A DNA stretch of 64,000 nucleotides. Origin: Paramoeba atlantica (lineage: Eukaryota > Protista > Discosea). The DNA is taken from the NCBI GenBank assembly GCA_977017575.1, contig CDRNVI010000088.1:62001-126000 (forward strand), given 5' to 3'. Within the stretch, counting starts at the first letter, position 1; each line of letters starts with the position of its first letter. A model generated the notes under the pieces. The model saw only the letters and a list, made by a program, of their open reading frames with translations. It was not told the origin of the DNA and made no database searches. The position numbers were made by a program, and so were the translations under genes. Of this stretch, positions 11,058 through 19,851 are shown piece by piece.

Positions 11058-12100
11058 ATGGACTGTCCAGGGTGCCCAACATTGGCCTGTTTGGCATTGG
11101 TGACTTCGATTCTACAGATAACAGCTAAAAATGTTGTTCCGTGGATGAAGAATCATTCATTCGGGGCGGACACTTCTTGTTTTCGGGGCGGAGCAATAAC
11201 CAGTTTGGTCTGGATATTCAGGAAATAGAGCATGTTTTCAGTATTCCTCGTGCTCCTCCGACTCACATGAGATATCTAATGGTGGATGAGACATACATGT
11301 ATATTGGTAAACGGCTGCACCACCGTGGTCACCAAACTCGAAAACGTAAGTTCTGGTTTATGACCGCAACTGAAGTTGATGAGCAAAGCGGAGAATCAAT
11401 ACAAACGCATTGGGAAATTACTCTCACGCGCACAAGAGTAGTAGAGTGTACGATGCTATGACTTTGTACGATCAGTGATAGCAAGCCGGAATTCCCTTGT
11501 TATTGCAGATGAATGGCGGGCGTATCAAGGAAAGATAGCTTTTGTCGACATCTAACTATATGTCATGCAGACGCGTTTTCTAGGGAGCACTCCCCTCATG
11601 TAACGGTCCATACTAACAACGCTGAAGCGGTGCATTCTTCTATTAAGGGTTATTGCAAGCGATTCTTTCACACGTGGGGTAGGGATTTGACCTCCTGCCA
11701 AGCCCGAGGCCGGTTTATTACATCCATTTTTTTTAAAACACCCGTGCAAAAACGATTTCAAAAACTGATGGTCATCATGAAAGGGCATTCGTCTGACACT
11801 ACTATGCCATCATTTCATCATCACGGTATATCAACACAGCTTCGCAATGATGATGAATCAGAAGATTCTGAGGACTCCAGCGATGATTCCGATGCAGGGG
11901 CTCCAACGACACGCTTAGGCCGGGCTTTGAATGAGCACATTCGACTACGAAGGAGGTATGGAAGAGAGAAAACAGGCGACTTTAAGTACCAGGTCCAAGG
12001 AGCCACAGATCGCCGTTACACCGTCTATATTGGCACTGGGGGAACTCAATGCACGTGTCCAGACGGCCGTAGAGGGAACAGATGCAAGCACATTTATATA
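11058..12100 (+). pseudogene. Merlin (IS1595/ISXO2-like) DDE transposase pseudogene with C-terminal SWIM finger, 5' part
   Basis: CPGC start; YLMVDETYMYIGKRLHHRG (D1); SLVIADEWRAY at about 11496-11525 in a third frame (D2); VHTNNAEAVHSSIK (E); in-frame CTCPD..RCKH SWIM; at least two frameshifts. Confidence 0.85.
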
Positions 12101-12376
12101 CAGTCCAGGTACTGGTTTCCCCCCCCCAGGCTCCTGAGCACACCGTAAGAGCTTTTGACCTAATTCCTTCGACATTCAACGGATCTCGAAAAAGTAGAGC
12201 GTTTCTCGTCGTTTTTTTGCCCATCACCCCCCCTGGGTCAAAAATATTTTGAAAACACACGAAAAAATAGCATAATTTTAACAAAAATATCCAATACTTC
12301 AAAAAATTAGGAGTTTTTTATCAAATATGGTTTCTTATTCTATGAATTTGAGGGATACCCCCGTTAAATCTACTAA

Positions 12377-13945
12377 AAGTACTCCAACTCGGCGAAAAAC
12401 AAGACACCCCCTATTACCCATAAAACTTCGCGATGTGCACTCCCAGAGCGCCTTGAAATTGTCCGCCAATATAGAAAAGGAAATTCGATTCATACTTTAG
12501 CTAAAACTTTTGGCAGGGACAGAAAGACTGTCCGTGAAATTCTGTCTACGTGGAAGTCTAAAAGTCCACTAGAACCCAAACCCCACCCAAGCCCTGGTTT
12601 CTCTGTGTCTACGAAGCCATTCAGGGCGGCACTCGTCAAAGTTGTTGACGATGCTAACAAAACAATCGATGGCTGCCCATCCTTTCCTTGGGTACATAAC
12701 GAAATGATTAAAAAGGGGTTTCATTGCTCTCTAAGCACAATAAAGAAAACTCTACGTTCATTAAATTACCTACTACAAGCAAAAGCACCTAGCTGCGAGT
12801 TAAAGCAACATCACAAAGAGGCCCGCTTAAGTCTAGCAGAGTCTTTATTGTCCTTTCCCAAAGAAAAATTAGATTCTATAATTTGGACGGACGAAAAAAA
12901 AATTACATGTGGTTCAAAGACTTACTCTCACTTTTTTATCGGAAAGAAAGGATGTACCAAAATTAAAATGAGGAGAAACAACCGATGGTTTGGTGGTAAA
13001 GGTGTCATGGTATGGATGGGAATCAGTGTGAAACACGGCCCTTTTTTGCATTTGTTTTCATCCCAATCGCAAGGTAAAAAAATTAGGGATGCAAGTTCCG
13101 TGAATCGCGCATGTCTTACTAATGTGATTTTATGTAAAATTTTAGAGGATTCGTTTCCAGGCCTGCGAGGCTTAATATAGCTTAAATTTATCGATACACT
13201 TTTCATTATCATATCTTTCGGAACTTAATGTCCCTTCAAACTTTTAAATTCTACTTTGCCAGTAAGCAACGCATCACTTCGCATCACTTTGTCACCTTTT
13301 CTGCCCTCTTGCAGGACTGTTTCGCGTGTCGCAATTCGCTCGCTTTCAAAACGTCATACGAAAACTGGTCGAATTCCAAACGGAGCTGAAAAGGAGTTTC
13401 GGCGCTCGACGGATGATAAACACACCAGCGTTTCGTGCACGTTTCGAAGCGTTGTCTGATCCTGCCAACGCCCTCCGCACTGCCACCTGTTTCGCTATCC
13501 AATGCAACCGCCTTCAGGTGACCGCAGGACTGTTTCGCGTGTTTCCGTGAAGGGTGAAACGATTCTCGTTGAGTGTTTTTCAAAAAGGGGGGGTATTCTT
13601 GAATATTTAGTTGAAAATAGAGAACAAGCGATTGTGCAAATGGACAATGCGGCCACGCATAACAATACGAAGCGTGTCCTTTTCGAAAAAGGAATTACTC
13701 GATTGGAGTGGCCAGCACTCTCTCCTGACCTCAATCCGATCGAGAATGTTTGGTCAATAATGGACCGAATTGTGAAAGAAATTCTGAAGCCAGAGACTGA
13801 AACACAGCTCCGGAAGGCAATAAAGAAAGCCTTCATGATGCTTAAGCGTCATCCTTATCGACGCCAAGTCTTAAATTGCATAAATTCAGTACCTAAACGC
13901 TTGCGAATAGTGCAGAGCGTTCAAGGAGACCATTGTGGGTATTAA
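12377..13945 (+). pseudogene. Tc1-like transposase (DD32E) interrupted by a 438-bp insertion; no ATG in the open 5' frame
   Basis: HTH LAKTFGRDRKTVREIL; IIWTDEKK; GGKGVMVW; QMDNAATH; WPALSPDLNPIENVW; both halves are in the same frame. Confidence 0.85.
13105..13542. mobile_element. 438-bp unclassified insertion with 9-bp target duplication TTCCGTGAA
   Basis: TTCCGTGAA at 13096-13104 and 13543-13551; removing 447 bp fuses DASSV to KGETIL in frame; internal 19-bp direct repeat GCAGGACTGTTTCGCGTGT (13311, 13524). Confidence 0.7.
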
Positions 13946-13946
13946 T

Positions 13947-13966
13947 ACAGTTTCTGTACCTTGTTG
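13947..13966 (+). other. Spliced-leader-like 20-mer at the 5' end of the retrotransposon
   Basis: ACAGTTTCTGTACCTTGTTG; 18/20 identical to the recalled kinetoplastid SL exon 3' end ACAGTTTCTGTACTTTATTG; followed by 29 nt then ATG at 13996. Confidence 0.75.
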
Positions 13967-13995
13967 ATTTTTTTTTCCCTACCCTTTACAACGAC

Positions 13996-16900
13996 ATGTT
14001 TTGCTTACTACTAGGGAAGGGCACACACCAGGCGTCGCAGGACTCTCCTAAGAGACCACGCGACGTGTCTAACCAAAACAAAAACCTGTCCCTGAAAGGC
14101 ACTCCCACAGACAGGGTTGCAAAATCTGCTACCCGAACCGTCCAGGCTCTATCCCAAAAGAGCAATGAGTCCCTTACCAGCGACACAGGAGAAGCACCCC
14201 CAGCTCCATGCAAACATCCTTGTAAGGACAAAAGCACCTGCGGACACCCCTGTTGCAAGCGGGGTGTAACGCGGCCACATATCCTGGTCACTCCTCACAC
14301 AAACGAACTTCCCCCTCACCCCGTCCCCCCCACCACACAACAAACGGTTCCGGAGTGCAAACACCGCTGCAAGGACAAAGCTCACTGTGAACACCCATGC
14401 TGCAAACGACACCTGGTACGCGTAGCAAAACCGGATACGTACAACAATAAGAGAAGTGACGTACCGGTGGATGCAAGAGAAGACGTGAAGGTGATCACGG
14501 CTGTGAGTGTAATGCCGGTACAACGTAGCACACCCTGTAAGCATGTCTGTAAAAACAAACAGACCTGCGGGCACCCATGTTGCAAACGTAATCTTACACC
14601 AACAACATACGAACTCACGAGCACTACGGCGAGCGGTCAAGAATCCGGGCCCAAAGAAGCTCCAAGTACGCGACAAAGGGACGAAACGTCACCGCCATGC
14701 GCGCGTGACCGCGTAACACAGGATGTGAAAGTACCGAAATCAAGCAACCTACTTGGCATGGCAGCGCGAGCTGCAACACGATATCTGTTTTCAAGCCGCA
14801 CTCAACCGTACGCTAACGGCACTCCCTCAACCCCGGCGGTAACCGTACGACCTCACAGCAGCACCGGACAGGAACGCTTGTCGTACACAATAGCACCCTG
14901 TCCAAAAGACGAACACGATTTACATGTACCCCCACCCAAGGAGGTTACTCCCCATCAAAAATCACCCACTGTTACCGTCGGTCGTGCCGTCGCATCAACT
15001 GCCTGCTCGCTTGCCAAATTCCTACCTTTCAACGGCGTTCCATGTCAAACTCCGGACTCCCAAAGCCTCCCCAAACCTAAATCTCAAACACAACTTCAGG
15101 TCCACGCCTTAACTAGCGTATGCAAGCATATCTGCAAGAGTAAAGATCAATGTAAGCACGTGTGCTGCAAGCAAGGCCTAGGCCCCGCCTCCGAACAAGC
15201 AGACCGTGTCGAGCCCTGTAAGCATAAATGTAAGAACAAAGCAGGGTGCGGCCATCCTTGCTGCAAACGCACTGGCACACCGTTGACTTCGCTTGACACA
15301 CCGATAAGCAAACTGGATGGGCAGGATACTCTACCCACCGGCCCATGTACCCTTCCCAAGAATCTCGTCACACCGTCCCTAAACGCAACCACTACGACAG
15401 CTGACCGTGCCGTTGCCAGGGAACCAACCATCCCGACTCCCAAAAACAAGGCACCGGAAAGTATCATTCTCTTGGACTCACCTTCCCCAGCACACCAACA
15501 CAGTCCGCGGAATGAGAATGGCGATGACGAAGTCCCATCCTGGGTTTTCCAACAAGCGCACAGCGTAGGGCGAATACAAAGCCCGCCGCTTGAACAAGGA
15601 AGCCTCTTACCCCCATCACAACTGGACACCCATTTACATTCGGATGAATCCGAGGGTCCCCAGATTCCCACACAAACTCCCGACAGCCCGTCACAGTATC
15701 TCCCGCCGCCCCAGGACCCCACGCATCCCGTAACCCATAACCGACACAAGCAACGTTTCCACTTTATCCAGTCCCGGTCAAAACCTGTCAAACTCCGCCT
15801 CGTCAACGACAACACATGGAGATATTTCCCGGATGTGCATGCAGCATGCGTAAGCCAACTTGTGCGTAGTCGTATCCCTTCCCCCCAGGGGGCTGAAGCC
15901 GCCCTGTCCAAAGCGCTCAATGGGAAAAGTGCAGCACACGACATCGTCGTAGAAACGTGTACCGTAGACGAACTTATGGAAAAGAGAGCGTGTGACTTTT
16001 TAGAAGTTAGTAGAGTAGACTCAACAAGTCACATTTCTCGCCACGCGAACTGGGTATCTCTTTTTCACGACAGCCGCCTGGAATTATACAACCACTACGC
16101 ATCACCTAGCTCAATGGGTAAAGCGGTAAACAAGGTACTGAACGGGAGAGCGGTCCCTGGGTTATCGGCGTTTCGGATCGTTCTGCTCCTTCGCACCGAC
16201 GACAAAGAAGAAGTACAGCCATCAAAGCCCCAAACGGTCCCAACACTTCCACCATACGAGATTATTTCGCGTGACCACGCCTCCTCCTTGAAGCGGACGC
16301 ACCCATGCCAACATCGATGCATAAGTAAACTCAAATGCAGCCATCCATGCTGCAAAATCTATGGACCATCCCTCGATCAGGGAATCGAAGGAGACTCTGA
16401 GGGGAGCCCCAACGCAGGACAAGAGCAAGAACACCCCGAACTTAACCCCCCCACTTCCGCTTCCTCTCCGAGACTACTCGACGAGACGGAGTACCTTTTC
16501 CGCACGGCACGATACATCCAGGGGGGCAAGTTAAACATAAACTTGGCTGACGCGCACTGGCACGAGGTGGAACGTAGGGCCCTCCACAGATGCAACACCT
16601 TGCTCACTGTCTCTGGCGACGCACTCTCCGCCGTCCATAACGCAGAACTACTGAGTGCAATACTAGCGGTGTCGGCATATGAAGTGGCGCGAGACGTCGA
16701 CTCCAGGAAGGGTTTCATTATCCGAACGGCTCGAGGACATATAAAGGGGAAAGTCCGTCCATTAGAAAGCGAAAAAGTTGCCTTTTCCTTCTCTCGACAT
16801 GTAAAACAACTACAAATGAAGCTGCGATACACACACGGCAAGGCTCCCCGCATGGCGTTGAAACAAAAGATTAAGGAAACCAAAAAGGCGGAACGTATAT

Positions 16901-19443
16901 ACAGCGCAGAAGCCATGGCCCAAAAACGGGAACTGGAAAGTCGCTGGGCACTTCAACAATTCAACCGCAATCCATGGACGGCTGCGAGTCAAACCTTGGA
17001 CAAAAGGACAGAAGCAGAAAGTGTACCGGCCTATCCGACTTGCAATGTACAGAAAGTGGAAAGTGTGTTCACAACATTACTTACGGACCCCACTACAGTG
17101 CATCACTTACCACCCCACGACGTCCTCGGAAACCGTCCTCTGGCAGAAATGACCTGGGACGAACTGGCTTCAATCGACATTTCGAACGCTCTCACATCAA
17201 AGAAAAACAGCAGTGCTCCAGGCCAGGACTCCATTACGTACCAGACTCTAAAGCGATGCCACAGCTCCCACACCCACATGGCAAACGTCTTCAACGCGCT
17301 AGTGCGCTTCAGCACATGTCCGACGTCGTGGAAAATATCCGTCACTCGCCTCATTTACAAAAAAGGGGAGCCTGACAACCCACAAAACTGGCGTCCCATC
17401 GGCCTGACTAGCGTACTAGGGAAACTCCTGCATTCCATCATCAGCCGGAAAATGACGAAATTCCTACTTGAAGCCTCTGTCATTGACCCCAAGATACAGA
17501 AAGGCTTTCTCCCCGCCATTAACGGTACTCTCGAACATACGCAATCCCTCTCAGAGCTCCTACGCCACTACCGGAAGAACAAGTGGAACTACTGCATGGC
17601 CCAGCTAGACCTCAGTAACGCCTTTGGTTCACTCCCCCGCAACATCATCTTTGAAGCACTGGAATGGGCGAGAATCTCCCCAAACATTATTAAATACGTC
17701 CAATGCTTATACACTGACGCAAGTACCCGCATTAAATGTTACGAAGGTCTGTCCAGCGCGATCCCAGCTAAACGAGGTGTCTTACAAGGTGACACTCTCT
17801 CTCCTACGCTCTTTCTGGTGATTATGGAGCTAGCCCTACGTTACATGGCAAAATCGTTTCCCTCATTTGGATTGAACCTCCCTGGATTTCCAAAAAGCTT
17901 CCTAAAAGCGTACGCCGACGATCTCACGGTCCTGACGAATAGTGAAAAAGAAATGCAACTGGCTGTTGAAACACTATCCACGGTACTCAGTTCGCTTGGC
18001 CTTTCCATCAACGTCAAAAAGTGCAGAGTCCAATATATGGCGTCCAAGAAAAATGATGAACACCCCGGCTACATGACACGACGTCCTCAAATTTTCATCA
18101 AGAACGAAGCTATACCGCATATATGCGACGAAGGAAGTACGTTTCTTGGCATGAATATTGCCCCCGGTTCTCAACAATCCCGAGCCCTTTTCACGAAAGT
18201 TAGGCCCTTATTGAAGCGATGGCTTCATAACATTGACCAGTCGGCCCACGACCTCCCATCAAAAATTTGGATATATCAACACGCAATCATCTCTCGGCTA
18301 CGCTTCACCTTTACTATACACCCATGTATCACGCTCAACTTTATTTTACGCCTTCAGAAAATGTGTACTCACTCCCTGAAACGGTGGATCAATGCGGCTA
18401 GAACTACATGCAGCGAAGCAATCTACTCTCAGCGTGGATGGAACATCTGCAGCTTGTCCAGACTCTGGGAGGACTGTACAGCTGATCTTCTCTGTCAAAT
18501 GAAGCGGTCCCGAGACCCGAACGTTACCGCCGCACTGCAGGAAAGAATACGGGCTGAAGAACATAAGCGCAGGAAAGGCCAAGTTCGACCAGCATGTGAC
18601 ATCACACACATACTGGAGGATCGCGACCTCGCAAAACGAACTCTTCTTGAGCTTAATGAGGACCGAATGATCAACGCACTACGCCGCAGGTCAACGTTCG
18701 CTATTCAGTGGTGGGATATAGCCTCCGAGGAAGAACAGGCGAAAGATTTCAGCGCCGCGATAAACGGACTACGTAGCACTTCCCTTAGCCGCTTCGCAAC
18801 TTCTTTAATGGTACAAAACACTCTCCCTACTAGGACAATGCTGAGGACATGGGGAATTCACGGCACAGATACAGTACAATGCCGAATTTGTAAACAAGAA
18901 CCGGAAACATTACGACACCTCTTATCCTCGTGCAAGGTATCACTAGAACAGGGACGTTACACGTATCGCCATGATTGTGTACTCTCCACCTTTGCAAACG
19001 CGATACTCTCTTCCCCCCATACCGCAGAGGCACATTTTGATCTCCCACACCTACGTCAACTACCCGCATGGTGGTCCGACCTGGAAACACAGCTTCGCCC
19101 AGATGGAATCGTCAAACTCAACGACGGAACTGAATTTATCGTTGAGTTGACGATGCCCTGGGAGGAAAACGTACACGAAGCCCACTGCCGAAAAGTAGAA
19201 AAGTACATAAATATTCTACACCGACGAAAAATAAGGTACTCAGACTGCCACTTGATATGCTTTGAAGTTGGAGCTAGAGGTCTCCCTTCTACGACGCTGC
19301 GTCACATCAACCGTCTCTTTTTGGGTGACAAGGCACTCTCAGATAAGTGCCGTGTCGAAGTCATCCGAACGGCGATCCGGAGCAGCTTTCAACTCTGGCT
19401 GAAAAGGGAATCCCCTTTATGGGACAACCAAAGCTTTGGTTAG
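13996..19443 (+). CDS. 1815-aa retrotransposon protein: 6x CxHxCx5CxHxCC fingers, RT, CCHC knuckle, PD-(D/E)xK REL endonuclease
   Basis: SAPGQDSI, LIYKKG..NWRPIGL, QKGF, LDLSNAFG, GVLQGDTLSP, YADD; CRIC..ETLRHLLSSC; YTYRHDCV, LRPDGIV, IVELTMPWE, RKVEKY, FEVGARG. Confidence 0.95.
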   Translation: MFCLLLGKGTHQASQDSPKRPRDVSNQNKNLSLKGTPTDRVAKSATRTVQALSQKSNESLTSDTGEAPPAPCKHPCKDKSTCGHPCCKRGVTRPHILVTPHTNELPPHPVPPTTQQTVPECKHRCKDKAHCEHPCCKRHLVRVAKPDTYNNKRSDVPVDAREDVKVITAVSVMPVQRSTPCKHVCKNKQTCGHPCCKRNLTPTTYELTSTTASGQESGPKEAPSTRQRDETSPPCARDRVTQDVKVPKSSNLLGMAARAATRYLFSSRTQPYANGTPSTPAVTVRPHSSTGQERLSYTIAPCPKDEHDLHVPPPKEVTPHQKSPTVTVGRAVASTACSLAKFLPFNGVPCQTPDSQSLPKPKSQTQLQVHALTSVCKHICKSKDQCKHVCCKQGLGPASEQADRVEPCKHKCKNKAGCGHPCCKRTGTPLTSLDTPISKLDGQDTLPTGPCTLPKNLVTPSLNATTTTADRAVAREPTIPTPKNKAPESIILLDSPSPAHQHSPRNENGDDEVPSWVFQQAHSVGRIQSPPLEQGSLLPPSQLDTHLHSDESEGPQIPTQTPDSPSQYLPPPQDPTHPVTHNRHKQRFHFIQSRSKPVKLRLVNDNTWRYFPDVHAACVSQLVRSRIPSPQGAEAALSKALNGKSAAHDIVVETCTVDELMEKRACDFLEVSRVDSTSHISRHANWVSLFHDSRLELYNHYASPSSMGKAVNKVLNGRAVPGLSAFRIVLLLRTDDKEEVQPSKPQTVPTLPPYEIISRDHASSLKRTHPCQHRCISKLKCSHPCCKIYGPSLDQGIEGDSEGSPNAGQEQEHPELNPPTSASSPRLLDETEYLFRTARYIQGGKLNINLADAHWHEVERRALHRCNTLLTVSGDALSAVHNAELLSAILAVSAYEVARDVDSRKGFIIRTARGHIKGKVRPLESEKVAFSFSRHVKQLQMKLRYTHGKAPRMALKQKIKETKKAERIYSAEAMAQKRELESRWALQQFNRNPWTAASQTLDKRTEAESVPAYPTCNVQKVESVFTTLLTDPTTVHHLPPHDVLGNRPLAEMTWDELASIDISNALTSKKNSSAPGQDSITYQTLKRCHSSHTHMANVFNALVRFSTCPTSWKISVTRLIYKKGEPDNPQNWRPIGLTSVLGKLLHSIISRKMTKFLLEASVIDPKIQKGFLPAINGTLEHTQSLSELLRHYRKNKWNYCMAQLDLSNAFGSLPRNIIFEALEWARISPNIIKYVQCLYTDASTRIKCYEGLSSAIPAKRGVLQGDTLSPTLFLVIMELALRYMAKSFPSFGLNLPGFPKSFLKAYADDLTVLTNSEKEMQLAVETLSTVLSSLGLSINVKKCRVQYMASKKNDEHPGYMTRRPQIFIKNEAIPHICDEGSTFLGMNIAPGSQQSRALFTKVRPLLKRWLHNIDQSAHDLPSKIWIYQHAIISRLRFTFTIHPCITLNFILRLQKMCTHSLKRWINAARTTCSEAIYSQRGWNICSLSRLWEDCTADLLCQMKRSRDPNVTAALQERIRAEEHKRRKGQVRPACDITHILEDRDLAKRTLLELNEDRMINALRRRSTFAIQWWDIASEEEQAKDFSAAINGLRSTSLSRFATSLMVQNTLPTRTMLRTWGIHGTDTVQCRICKQEPETLRHLLSSCKVSLEQGRYTYRHDCVLSTFANAILSSPHTAEAHFDLPHLRQLPAWWSDLETQLRPDGIVKLNDGTEFIVELTMPWEENVHEAHCRKVEKYINILHRRKIRYSDCHLICFEVGARGLPSTTLRHINRLFLGDKALSDKCRVEVIRTAIRSSFQLWLKRESPLWDNQSFG

Positions 19444-19756
19444 CAAATGGTCTAGCAGGCGACGTCATATGCGTACGTCCTGTTAGACTTTATTACTCTA
19501 CAGGTAATGCCCTGTATAGATATAATATTACATACACCTTTTTTGTCATTTTTTACCCCCCTTCAAAAATATTTTTATTTTTGAAATTTGCCATCTTTGA
19601 TCACACCCACCCAGAACCCAGGGGGGGTGATGGGCAAACAAACGGCGGAAAACGCTCTACTTTTTCGAGATCCGTTGAATGCCGAAGGAATTAGGTCAAA
19701 AGATCTTACGGTGTTCTCAGGAGCCTGGGGGGGGGGAAACCAATACCTGGACTGTA

Positions 19757-19851
19757 TATATACTGTATATAAGGAACTTCATGTTGATGAAAATCATCCG
19801 GTTCTTTTGAAATCTGAATATACTGCACGGGAGCTTTCAATACTACAATAG
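19757..19851 (+). pseudogene. Displaced 3' end of the Merlin-SWIM ORF
   Basis: Directly after the right TIR: YTVYKELHVDENHPVLLKSEYTARELSILQ*, resembling the helix that follows CKH in ZSWIM2/MAP3K1-type SWIM domains. Confidence 0.55.

Follow-up and report, generated by a model that had tools for sequence, protein, structure and literature searches.

In kinetoplastids only RNAs capped with a spliced leader (SL) are translated and genes transcribed by RNA polymerase II (Pol II) have no individual promoters, which makes the supply of a usable RNA a real question for mobile elements in these organisms. The known answers are an internal promoter, as in L1Tc/ingi, and residence in the SL genes, as in CRE and SLACS: CRE1/CRE2, SLACS, CZAR and NeSL-1 have their insertion sites within the exon of SL RNA genes, in trypanosomatids between nucleotides 11 and 12. 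Here we analyse an element in a 64,000-nt stretch of DNA deposited under Paramoeba atlantica (NCBI GenBank assembly GCA_977017575.1, contig CDRNVI010000088.1, positions 62,001 to 126,000 of the forward strand; hereafter the window), which lies inside a Tc1/mariner-type transposon and opens with a piece of the SL. Judged by its domain content, the element is a non-long-terminal-repeat (non-LTR) retrotransposon of the restriction-like endonuclease (RLE) type (R2 supergroup), and we consider it very probable that the window holds a young insertion of this supergroup headed by a 5'-truncated copy of the cell's own SL, which it owes to a trans-spliced RNA.

R2/RLE elements resemble the window element in possessing a single open reading frame (ORF) in which a reverse transcriptase (RT) is followed by a CCHC finger and a PD-(D/E)xK-type endonuclease, with about 700 residues alignable, and further in lacking poly(A), in being full length in most copies and in leaving a small target deletion. 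R2 is confined to one site in the 28S rRNA gene and has the 5' end of its RNA freed by a ribozyme, whereas the copies described here are dispersed and their 5' end is the host SL; N-terminally, R2 carries zinc finger (ZF)/Myb domains in contrast to the six Cys/His motifs found here in the N-terminal half of the ORF. CRE1/CRE2, SLACS and CZAR of trypanosomatids and NeSL-1 of nematodes belong to the same broad element class, live in hosts that practise SL trans-splicing and are linked to the SL. In those elements the SL is the flank, whereas here the 3' part of the SL is the element's own first sequence and the flanks are unrelated.

The L1Tc/ingi elements of trypanosomatids are reported to have their own 77-nt internal promoter, Pr77, and unspliced translatable transcripts (PMC1874656, PMC8190864). 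L1Tc/ingi shares with the window element the character of a long interspersed nuclear element (LINE) and the same expression problem in a polycistronic, trans-splicing genome, but relies on its own promoter, whereas the solution seen here is the opposite one, with the host SL at the RNA 5' end. For dinoflagellate retrogenes, a DNA copy of the SL at the 5' end has been taken as proof of an mRNA intermediate, with stacked truncated relics arising from repeated rounds (PMC5585692, PMC6050394, PMC12014239). Both features, the SL copy at the 5' end of a retroposed sequence and the stacked truncated relics, recur here, but the dinoflagellate sequences are host retrogenes and those described here are autonomous euglenozoan retrotransposons with their own 3' end and no poly(A). 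A full-text literature search turned up SL relics only for dinoflagellate retrogenes and none for transposons of Euglenozoa; the Diplonema genome paper lists SLACS-like RTs and leaves SL relics unmentioned.

Results

The limits of the insertion were defined by comparison with other copies of the Tc1 transposon. Uninterrupted copies read TATTAATA-TAGGAATT-CATACACC and lack the 20-nt SL sequence (20-mer) with which the element opens; after the stop codon, more than 20 other Tc1 copies continue as ...GGGTATTAAT-ATAGGAATTCATACACC, also given as ...GGGTATTAAT-ATAGGAATTCATACACCTTTTTTGTC. Read contigs from three runs likewise connect position 13947 to position 19531 via TAGGAATT and represent the empty sites of other Tc1 copies. 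Because empty copies and contigs join the flanks via TAGGAATT, 13948-19530 is an insertion that replaces 8 bp of the Tc1 target. The Tc1|SL junction itself is bridged by no read contig, the contigs ending at repeat borders. A filled site in the window, empty sites in other Tc1 copies and the lack of terminal repeats, with neither LTR nor terminal inverted repeat (TIR) of the inserted element present in an inverted-repeat analysis, are as expected for target-primed insertion. The absence of the 20-mer from empty Tc1 copies also upholds an earlier first-pass annotation of the window, which had assigned the 20-mer to the element; a role of the 20-mer as a Tc1 end or TIR is ruled out by the same empty sites, and the Tc1 inverted repeats differ from it in sequence.

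The 20-mer, ACAGTTTCTGTACCTTGTTG, occupies 13947-13966 on the plus strand, which also carries the other features of the element, and is a 5'-truncated DNA copy of the SL exon: it corresponds to the last 20 nt of the approximately 38-nt SL and is identical over 20/20 positions to the exon end of the organism's own SL RNA genes. Counted from 13945, the match extends to the last 22 nt of the exon (13945-13966, 22/22, zero mismatches), since ATA (13945-13947) belongs to both Tc1 and SL and forms a microhomology at the junction. The first-pass annotation had let the element start exactly at the junction with the Tc1 stop codon; the layout of the sequence agrees with this, but the exact boundary moves to 13947|13948 when empty Tc1 sites are compared, ATA being shared. 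The same annotation had relied on an 18/20 match to a kinetoplastid SL, an argument now strengthened by the 20/20 match to the organism's own SL, with its SL RNA genes, GTATGAG donor and 5S-linked arrays. Genome-wide (45.7 Mb, up to 2 mismatches), the 20-mer has 968 matches, about equally divided between the two strands, and its reversed control has 0, which excludes a chance match.

The survey of these sites located the SL RNA genes as about 40 sites reading ...CCTTGTTG|GTATGAGAAGC. Their exon and donor sequence is AACTTTAACGATAAAGATACAGTTTCTGTACCTTGTTG|GTATGAGAAGC, so that the SL exon is AACTTTAACGATAAAGATACAGTTTCTGTACCTTGTTG, ends in ...GATACAGTTTCTGTACCTTGTTG|GTATGAG and is followed by an intron starting with GTATGAG, which is conserved as the donor among the SL RNAs of trypanosomatids. 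The SL gene sites inspected are preceded by a constant upstream sequence and AACTTTAACGATAAAGAT. The genes form regular tandem arrays, with a repeat length of about 2.56 kb on C97 and C107, and such arrays are found on contigs C3, C11 and C74 too. Searched against Rfam, the SL repeat unit contains a 5S rRNA gene (99 bits) and matches no SL RNA family at E 0.01; kinetoplastid SL RNA genes are classically laid out in such tandem repeats with 5S rRNA. Among named proteins, the phosphoenolpyruvate carboxykinase (PEPCK) encoded in the window is closest to Perkinsela (69%), with Diplonema farther away (58%), and the host of the SL-headed elements is a kinetoplastid-type euglenozoan. No paper found in our literature search gives the SL sequence of this organism. 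In a small read run (X5), which bears the same species label and was guessed to be RNA, there are contigs in which the SL end lies close to the contig's own end and leads into unrelated sequences, hinting weakly at the presence of the SL on RNAs. At window position 13945, X5 contigs have CGTTAAAG before ATACAG where the genome has CGATAAAG, possibly a one-base SL difference between isolates or an error. On contig C74 (C74:104189-121534), the SL RNA genes are spaced by 2.7, 7.3 and 7.3 kb, compared with 2.56 kb on C97/C107, which suggests insertions of about 4.7 kb in this array, possibly true SL-gene-resident elements.

The element carries a single intact ORF of 1815 aa (13996..19443, translated from the ATG at 13996) behind a 29-nt T/C-rich 5' untranslated region (UTR; 13967..13995), in which a T-run precedes CCCTACCCTTTACAACGAC; the T-rich part varies among copies. 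The six motifs of the form CxHxCxxKxxCxHxCCK fall in the N-terminal half (nt 14209-16356). The N-terminal 1100 aa gave nothing against Pfam at a lenient threshold, and an AP-endonuclease (Exo_endo_phos) match was missing even at E 5. The RT (nt 17359-18057, aa 1122-1354) matches Pfam RVT_1 with an E value of 3.6e-28, and its YADD at nt 17911 (aa 1306) is aligned with the FADD of R2. The CCHC finger and restriction-like endonuclease span nt 18880-19284, zf-RVT being matched in Pfam as well. Over the C-terminal 700-750 residues or so, the protein can be aligned from end to end with R2 proteins whose structures are known (9nl3, 9dou; E ~1e-31), and the aligned motifs include CRICK...H...C (CCHC), YRHD (RH(D/N)), RPDG ((K/R)PD), VELT ((E/D)xT), KVEKY (KVxKY) and GARG; from this alignment, the endonuclease residues would be expected to have a catalytic role. 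Just past the ATG, at window positions 14000-14014, TTGCTTACTACTAG resembles TTGCTTACTAG|GGTCGCACCATG, which stands just before the ATG in a related family (L006/L030). TTGCTTACTACTAG looks like an internal polypyrimidine-AG acceptor, whose use would remove the annotated start codon in this family.

Downstream of the ORF, the 3' UTR (19444..19526) ends in ...CCCTGTATAGATATAAT and has no poly(A), each copy ending in a short variable A/T tail. The four bases ATTA at 19527..19530, between the common element end and the resumption of Tc1, are of uncertain origin and may be element tail or filler. All 14 3' ends of the family read ...CCCTGTATAGATATAA(T), that is, they agree up to GATATAA(T) and then add a few variable A/T bases, and a poly(A) tail is present at none of them. 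In this respect the family departs from SL relics with poly(A), and the missing poly(A) would fit an enzyme that starts synthesis on its own 3' UTR.

The family to which the window copy belongs comprises 12 5'-complete copies and 14 3' ends with an identity of 97-100% (97-99% for the 5'-complete copies). All 12 5'-complete copies open with a piece of the SL, ranging from 24 nt (AGATACAG...) to 10 nt (TACCTTGTTG). The position at which the SL starts varies between copies, two independent copies starting at the same base (AGATACAG...), and every piece ends in register at the last G of the exon, ...CCTTGTTG. Alignment of the 12 5' ends shows that the SL piece is followed by a T-rich stretch of variable length and then by the constant CCCTACCCTTTACAACGACATG. 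As in the SL relics of retroposed mRNAs, the SL 3' end thus stands in register at the 5' end of the insert, matches the SL of the species perfectly and is missing at the empty site. The 12 copies are spread over about 10 distinct, unrelated sites, two pairs having a flank in common; the site of the window copy is a Tc1 3' UTR, and no site is in an SL gene. The SL-exon specificity of CRE, SLACS, CZAR and NeSL is therefore not seen, in line with the contrast that the first-pass annotation had drawn, and the SL-array contigs listed contain no copy of the family. A convincing target-site duplication was not found when the 5' and 3' flanks of a few copies were compared by eye, and most other copies lack a microhomology at the 5' junction such as the ATA of the window copy.

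Two copies carry stacked leaders. L092 has a 24-nt SL piece ending in CCTTGTTG on top of a stub, ACCTTGTTG, and L093 an 18-nt piece, again ending in CCTTGTTG, on the stub CTTGTTG, with a UTR behind it that resembles that of L095. As a new SL piece sits on an older stub of 7 or 9 nt, the leader was gained anew, following an earlier insertion that had been truncated, by an ancestor that carried a short stub, and acquisition in this family is recurrent. Variable SL lengths, in-register ends and unrelated flanks exclude both a fixed encoded mimic and an origin of the SL piece from the target site. The built-in SL mimic, one of the two options left by the first-pass annotation, is accordingly abandoned, the SL piece differing in length among independent copies and being stacked in two.

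SL relics extend far beyond this family. When the approximately 40 SL genes are subtracted from the 968 sites, about 930 dispersed SL-marked insertions remain. At 373 of the 968 sites at least 35 nt of the SL are present, about 40 of these 373 being the true SL genes; the remaining SL sites head many unrelated repeat families, in many cases with the poly(A) of an upstream element immediately before them. Because SL relics directly follow the poly(A) of other elements, retroelements are often joined head to tail. Many near-full relics of this kind are found among L005-L030, for example ...CTTATTAATTGC(A)n followed by CTTTAACG..., and several unrelated families in this set share the first bases past the SL (AATTATTT..). 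L001-L004 (C1:9752-25049) form a tandem array with a period of 5093 bp, in each unit of which one 34-nt sequence, ACTTTTCTTATTTGTATTTCGCACGAATAAAAGT, stands on either side of a near-full SL.

At 95 sites genome-wide, one SL end has another behind it within 24 nt (examples L115-L134). The inner stubs are most often 10 nt (n=35), 7 nt (n=18) or 16 nt (n=11) long, and those of 10 nt are shared by at least 8 families unrelated to one another. Stacked relics in dinoflagellates are attributed to re-splicing at an AG inside the SL. The 16-nt stub is the expected product of re-splicing at the internal AG of the SL (ACAG|TTTCTG), and of these three stub classes it is the only one that follows an AG; most stubs here (10 and 7 nt) do not follow an AG, in contrast to the dinoflagellate stacks. 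About a dozen of the 95 stacks contain short unrelated spacers, as expected for AG splicing in the flank.

Other families also begin with truncated leaders. The nearest homologous proteins, P0001 and P0003 (41-56% identity, ENA assembly ERZ24900291), belong to LINE families that start with the SL as well, from about nt 12-13. We rejected them as cross-species evidence, as ERZ24900291 has the same SL and identical loci and is thus the same organism; the families are paralogous. A further set of 177 'TTGGT' sites, taken at one point for SL genes or transposon ends, resolved into the approximately 40 SL genes and a family of about 570 bp resembling short interspersed nuclear elements (SINEs). This SINE-like family (~570-620 bp; L031-L059, e.g. 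C3:18107, C4:128703) has about 135 sites in several subfamilies with 80-99% identity. The starting point is uniform, at about SL nt 12 (ATAAAGATACAG...CCTTGTTG), and the sequence goes on with GTACATTTT; the three bases past the SL are the GTA of the SL gene donor. It has no inverted repeat or long poly(A) and ends in ...GCGCATGAACATCAAAA, and one copy sits cleanly inside a (GT)n microsatellite.

In the Tc1/mariner-type host transposon, the left terminal inverted repeat (12095..12238) pairs with 19616-19760, the complementarity amounting to 93% in a 123-nt arm and 97% in a 33-nt arm. An N-terminal transposase fragment (HTH_Tnp_Tc3_2, 12605..13180, plus strand) is a weak match to Pfam PF01498 (E 1.1e-4; 22.8 bits, under the curated Pfam cut-off of 31.5), and a C-terminal DDE_3 fragment (13502..13945, plus strand) matches PF13358 with an E value of 3.5e-10 and ends with the TAA stop codon at 13943-13945. 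The DDE stretch has 43 other matches in the genome, about a dozen of them at 98-100% identity. Behind the insertion, the rest of the Tc1 3' end (19531..19760, plus strand) resumes at CATACACCTTTTTTGTC and includes the right inverted repeat (19616-19760). A 143-bp segment at window positions 13400-13542 is missing from most other Tc1 copies and recurs elsewhere as pairs separated by 213 bp (C12:828381/828594, C2:674661/674874, C2:683805/684018); this Tc1 copy has probably received a small secondary insertion to which the segment belongs.

Discussion

The proposal of the first-pass annotation that the window copy was reverse-transcribed from an SL-bearing RNA fits the SL pieces, which are varied in length, in register and absent from empty sites. 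On the molecular level, the RNA of the element would be trans-spliced like any mRNA of the organism and would thereby receive the SL at its 5' end. Target-primed reverse transcription would then begin on the 3' end of the element itself, which would account for the missing poly(A), and cDNA synthesis would proceed to within 14-28 nt of the RNA 5' end before the product is joined to the target.

Several observations weigh against this origin from a freshly trans-spliced RNA. In none of the 12 copies is there a polypyrimidine-AG acceptor at the SL/UTR junction, the UTR always being preceded by ...TTG, and because the acceptor is missing, canonical AG trans-splicing of any of these copies could not recreate the SL-UTR RNA. 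The first AG past the T-tract of the window copy is found at 14013-14014, downstream of the ATG. A donor copy with a polypyrimidine tract and AG in place of the 20-mer, which the first-pass annotation had anticipated, did not turn up, 12/12 copies carrying an SL piece. The SL of the family reaches at most 24 nt, compared with 35-38 nt in other families, and part of the relic may be inherited and not renewed in each cycle. The window copy is moreover antisense to all neighbouring host genes, which lie on the minus strand (POLR3C-like, PFK2/FBPase2, a kinase, ELP3-like and PEPCK genes), and is unlikely to be a source copy; run X5, the guessed RNA, yielded no contig on the element body.

Part of this evidence would be accommodated if trans-splicing had been ancestral, the SL had since become part of the element and the template of the window copy had begun inside the parental relic. 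The limit of 24 nt, the shared starting base of two independent copies, the lack of an AG acceptor at every junction and the uniform starts near SL nt 12-13 of the SINE-like family and the two paralogous LINE families all point in this direction, but the stacked stubs of L092 and L093 show the SL added again after truncation, and an RNA 5' end inside the relic would have no known cause, the upstream flanks being unrelated. We regard such inheritance as possible though rather unlikely, and it bears on the last step alone, the origin of the leader still being trans-splicing. The leader could instead be gained during reverse transcription: the RT, having reached the 5' end of an element RNA that is often shortened, would jump from there onto a free SL exon or another SL-bearing RNA, entering it at its 3' end. 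R2-type enzymes jump end to end between templates, and the 95 sites with a full SL end directly on a stub, mostly of 10 or 7 nt and without a preceding AG, together with the recurrence of the 10-nt class in at least 8 different families, would agree with such jumps. A free SL exon is, however, a rare splicing intermediate, trans-splicing accounts for the in-register junction without an extra assumption, and both the 11 stacks with a 16-nt stub and the dozen or so with short flank-derived spacers are expected from re-splicing, at the internal AG of the SL and at an upstream AG, respectively; a template jump therefore strikes us as distinctly improbable.

The residence of the relatives CRE, SLACS and NeSL in SL genes raises the further thought that a master copy right behind the exon of an SL RNA gene is driven by the SL promoter and acquires its leader by co-transcription, with no trans-splicing involved. 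The irregular spacing of the C74 genes (2.7 and 7.3 kb) suggests that insertions in the array do exist, but no copy of the family lies on an SL array contig and SL nt 1-14 or the upstream sequence of the SL genes appear in no copy, which leaves little room for this scenario. Least probable of all, to the point of being negligible, is that the 20-mer is not borne by the element and represents Tc1 sequence, a preferred SL-like target site or chance. A separate abundant repeat in which the 20-mer is followed by GTAC had at first suggested a transposon end; this reading is refuted, however, since the window copy continues with a T-run and not with GTAC, the 20-mer is missing from the empty Tc1 sites, all copies have unrelated flanks and the reversed control yields no matches against 968. 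We therefore retain the derivation from a trans-spliced, SL-bearing RNA as the explanation of the window copy.

The acceptor missing at every junction remains a concrete puzzle about leader renewal. One suggestion, which we think unlikely but worth stating, is that the stub of a truncated insertion steers the regain of the leader, in place of ordinary AG trans-splicing of each new copy. The RT might make an end-to-end or homology-guided jump onto the SL exon or SL RNA, or splicing might occur at non-AG sites within the stub. Stub-guided renewal would explain the missing acceptors, the recurrent 10- and 7-nt stubs and the uniform starts near SL nt 12-15 of several families, and the host leader would then act much as the R repeat does for retroviruses.

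Trans-spliced mRNAs of transposable elements are to be expected in an organism of this kind; what stands out is their genomic record, the dispersed lifestyle of an RLE element and the puzzle of leader renewal. Our literature search found no description of the combination of an RLE LINE with an SL-relic retrocopy for Euglenozoa, the kinds of component being known. If, as we consider very probable, the SL derives from trans-spliced RNA, the family records a third route to a usable RNA beside the internal promoter and residence in SL genes, in which host trans-splicing is used and the leader-bearing RNA is then copied. In about 930 insertions, the SL tag shows exactly where the transposition intermediate had its 5' end, and the genome constitutes a natural record of retrotransposition, 5' truncation and repeated SL addition, like that of dinoflagellate retrogenes but written by autonomous elements.

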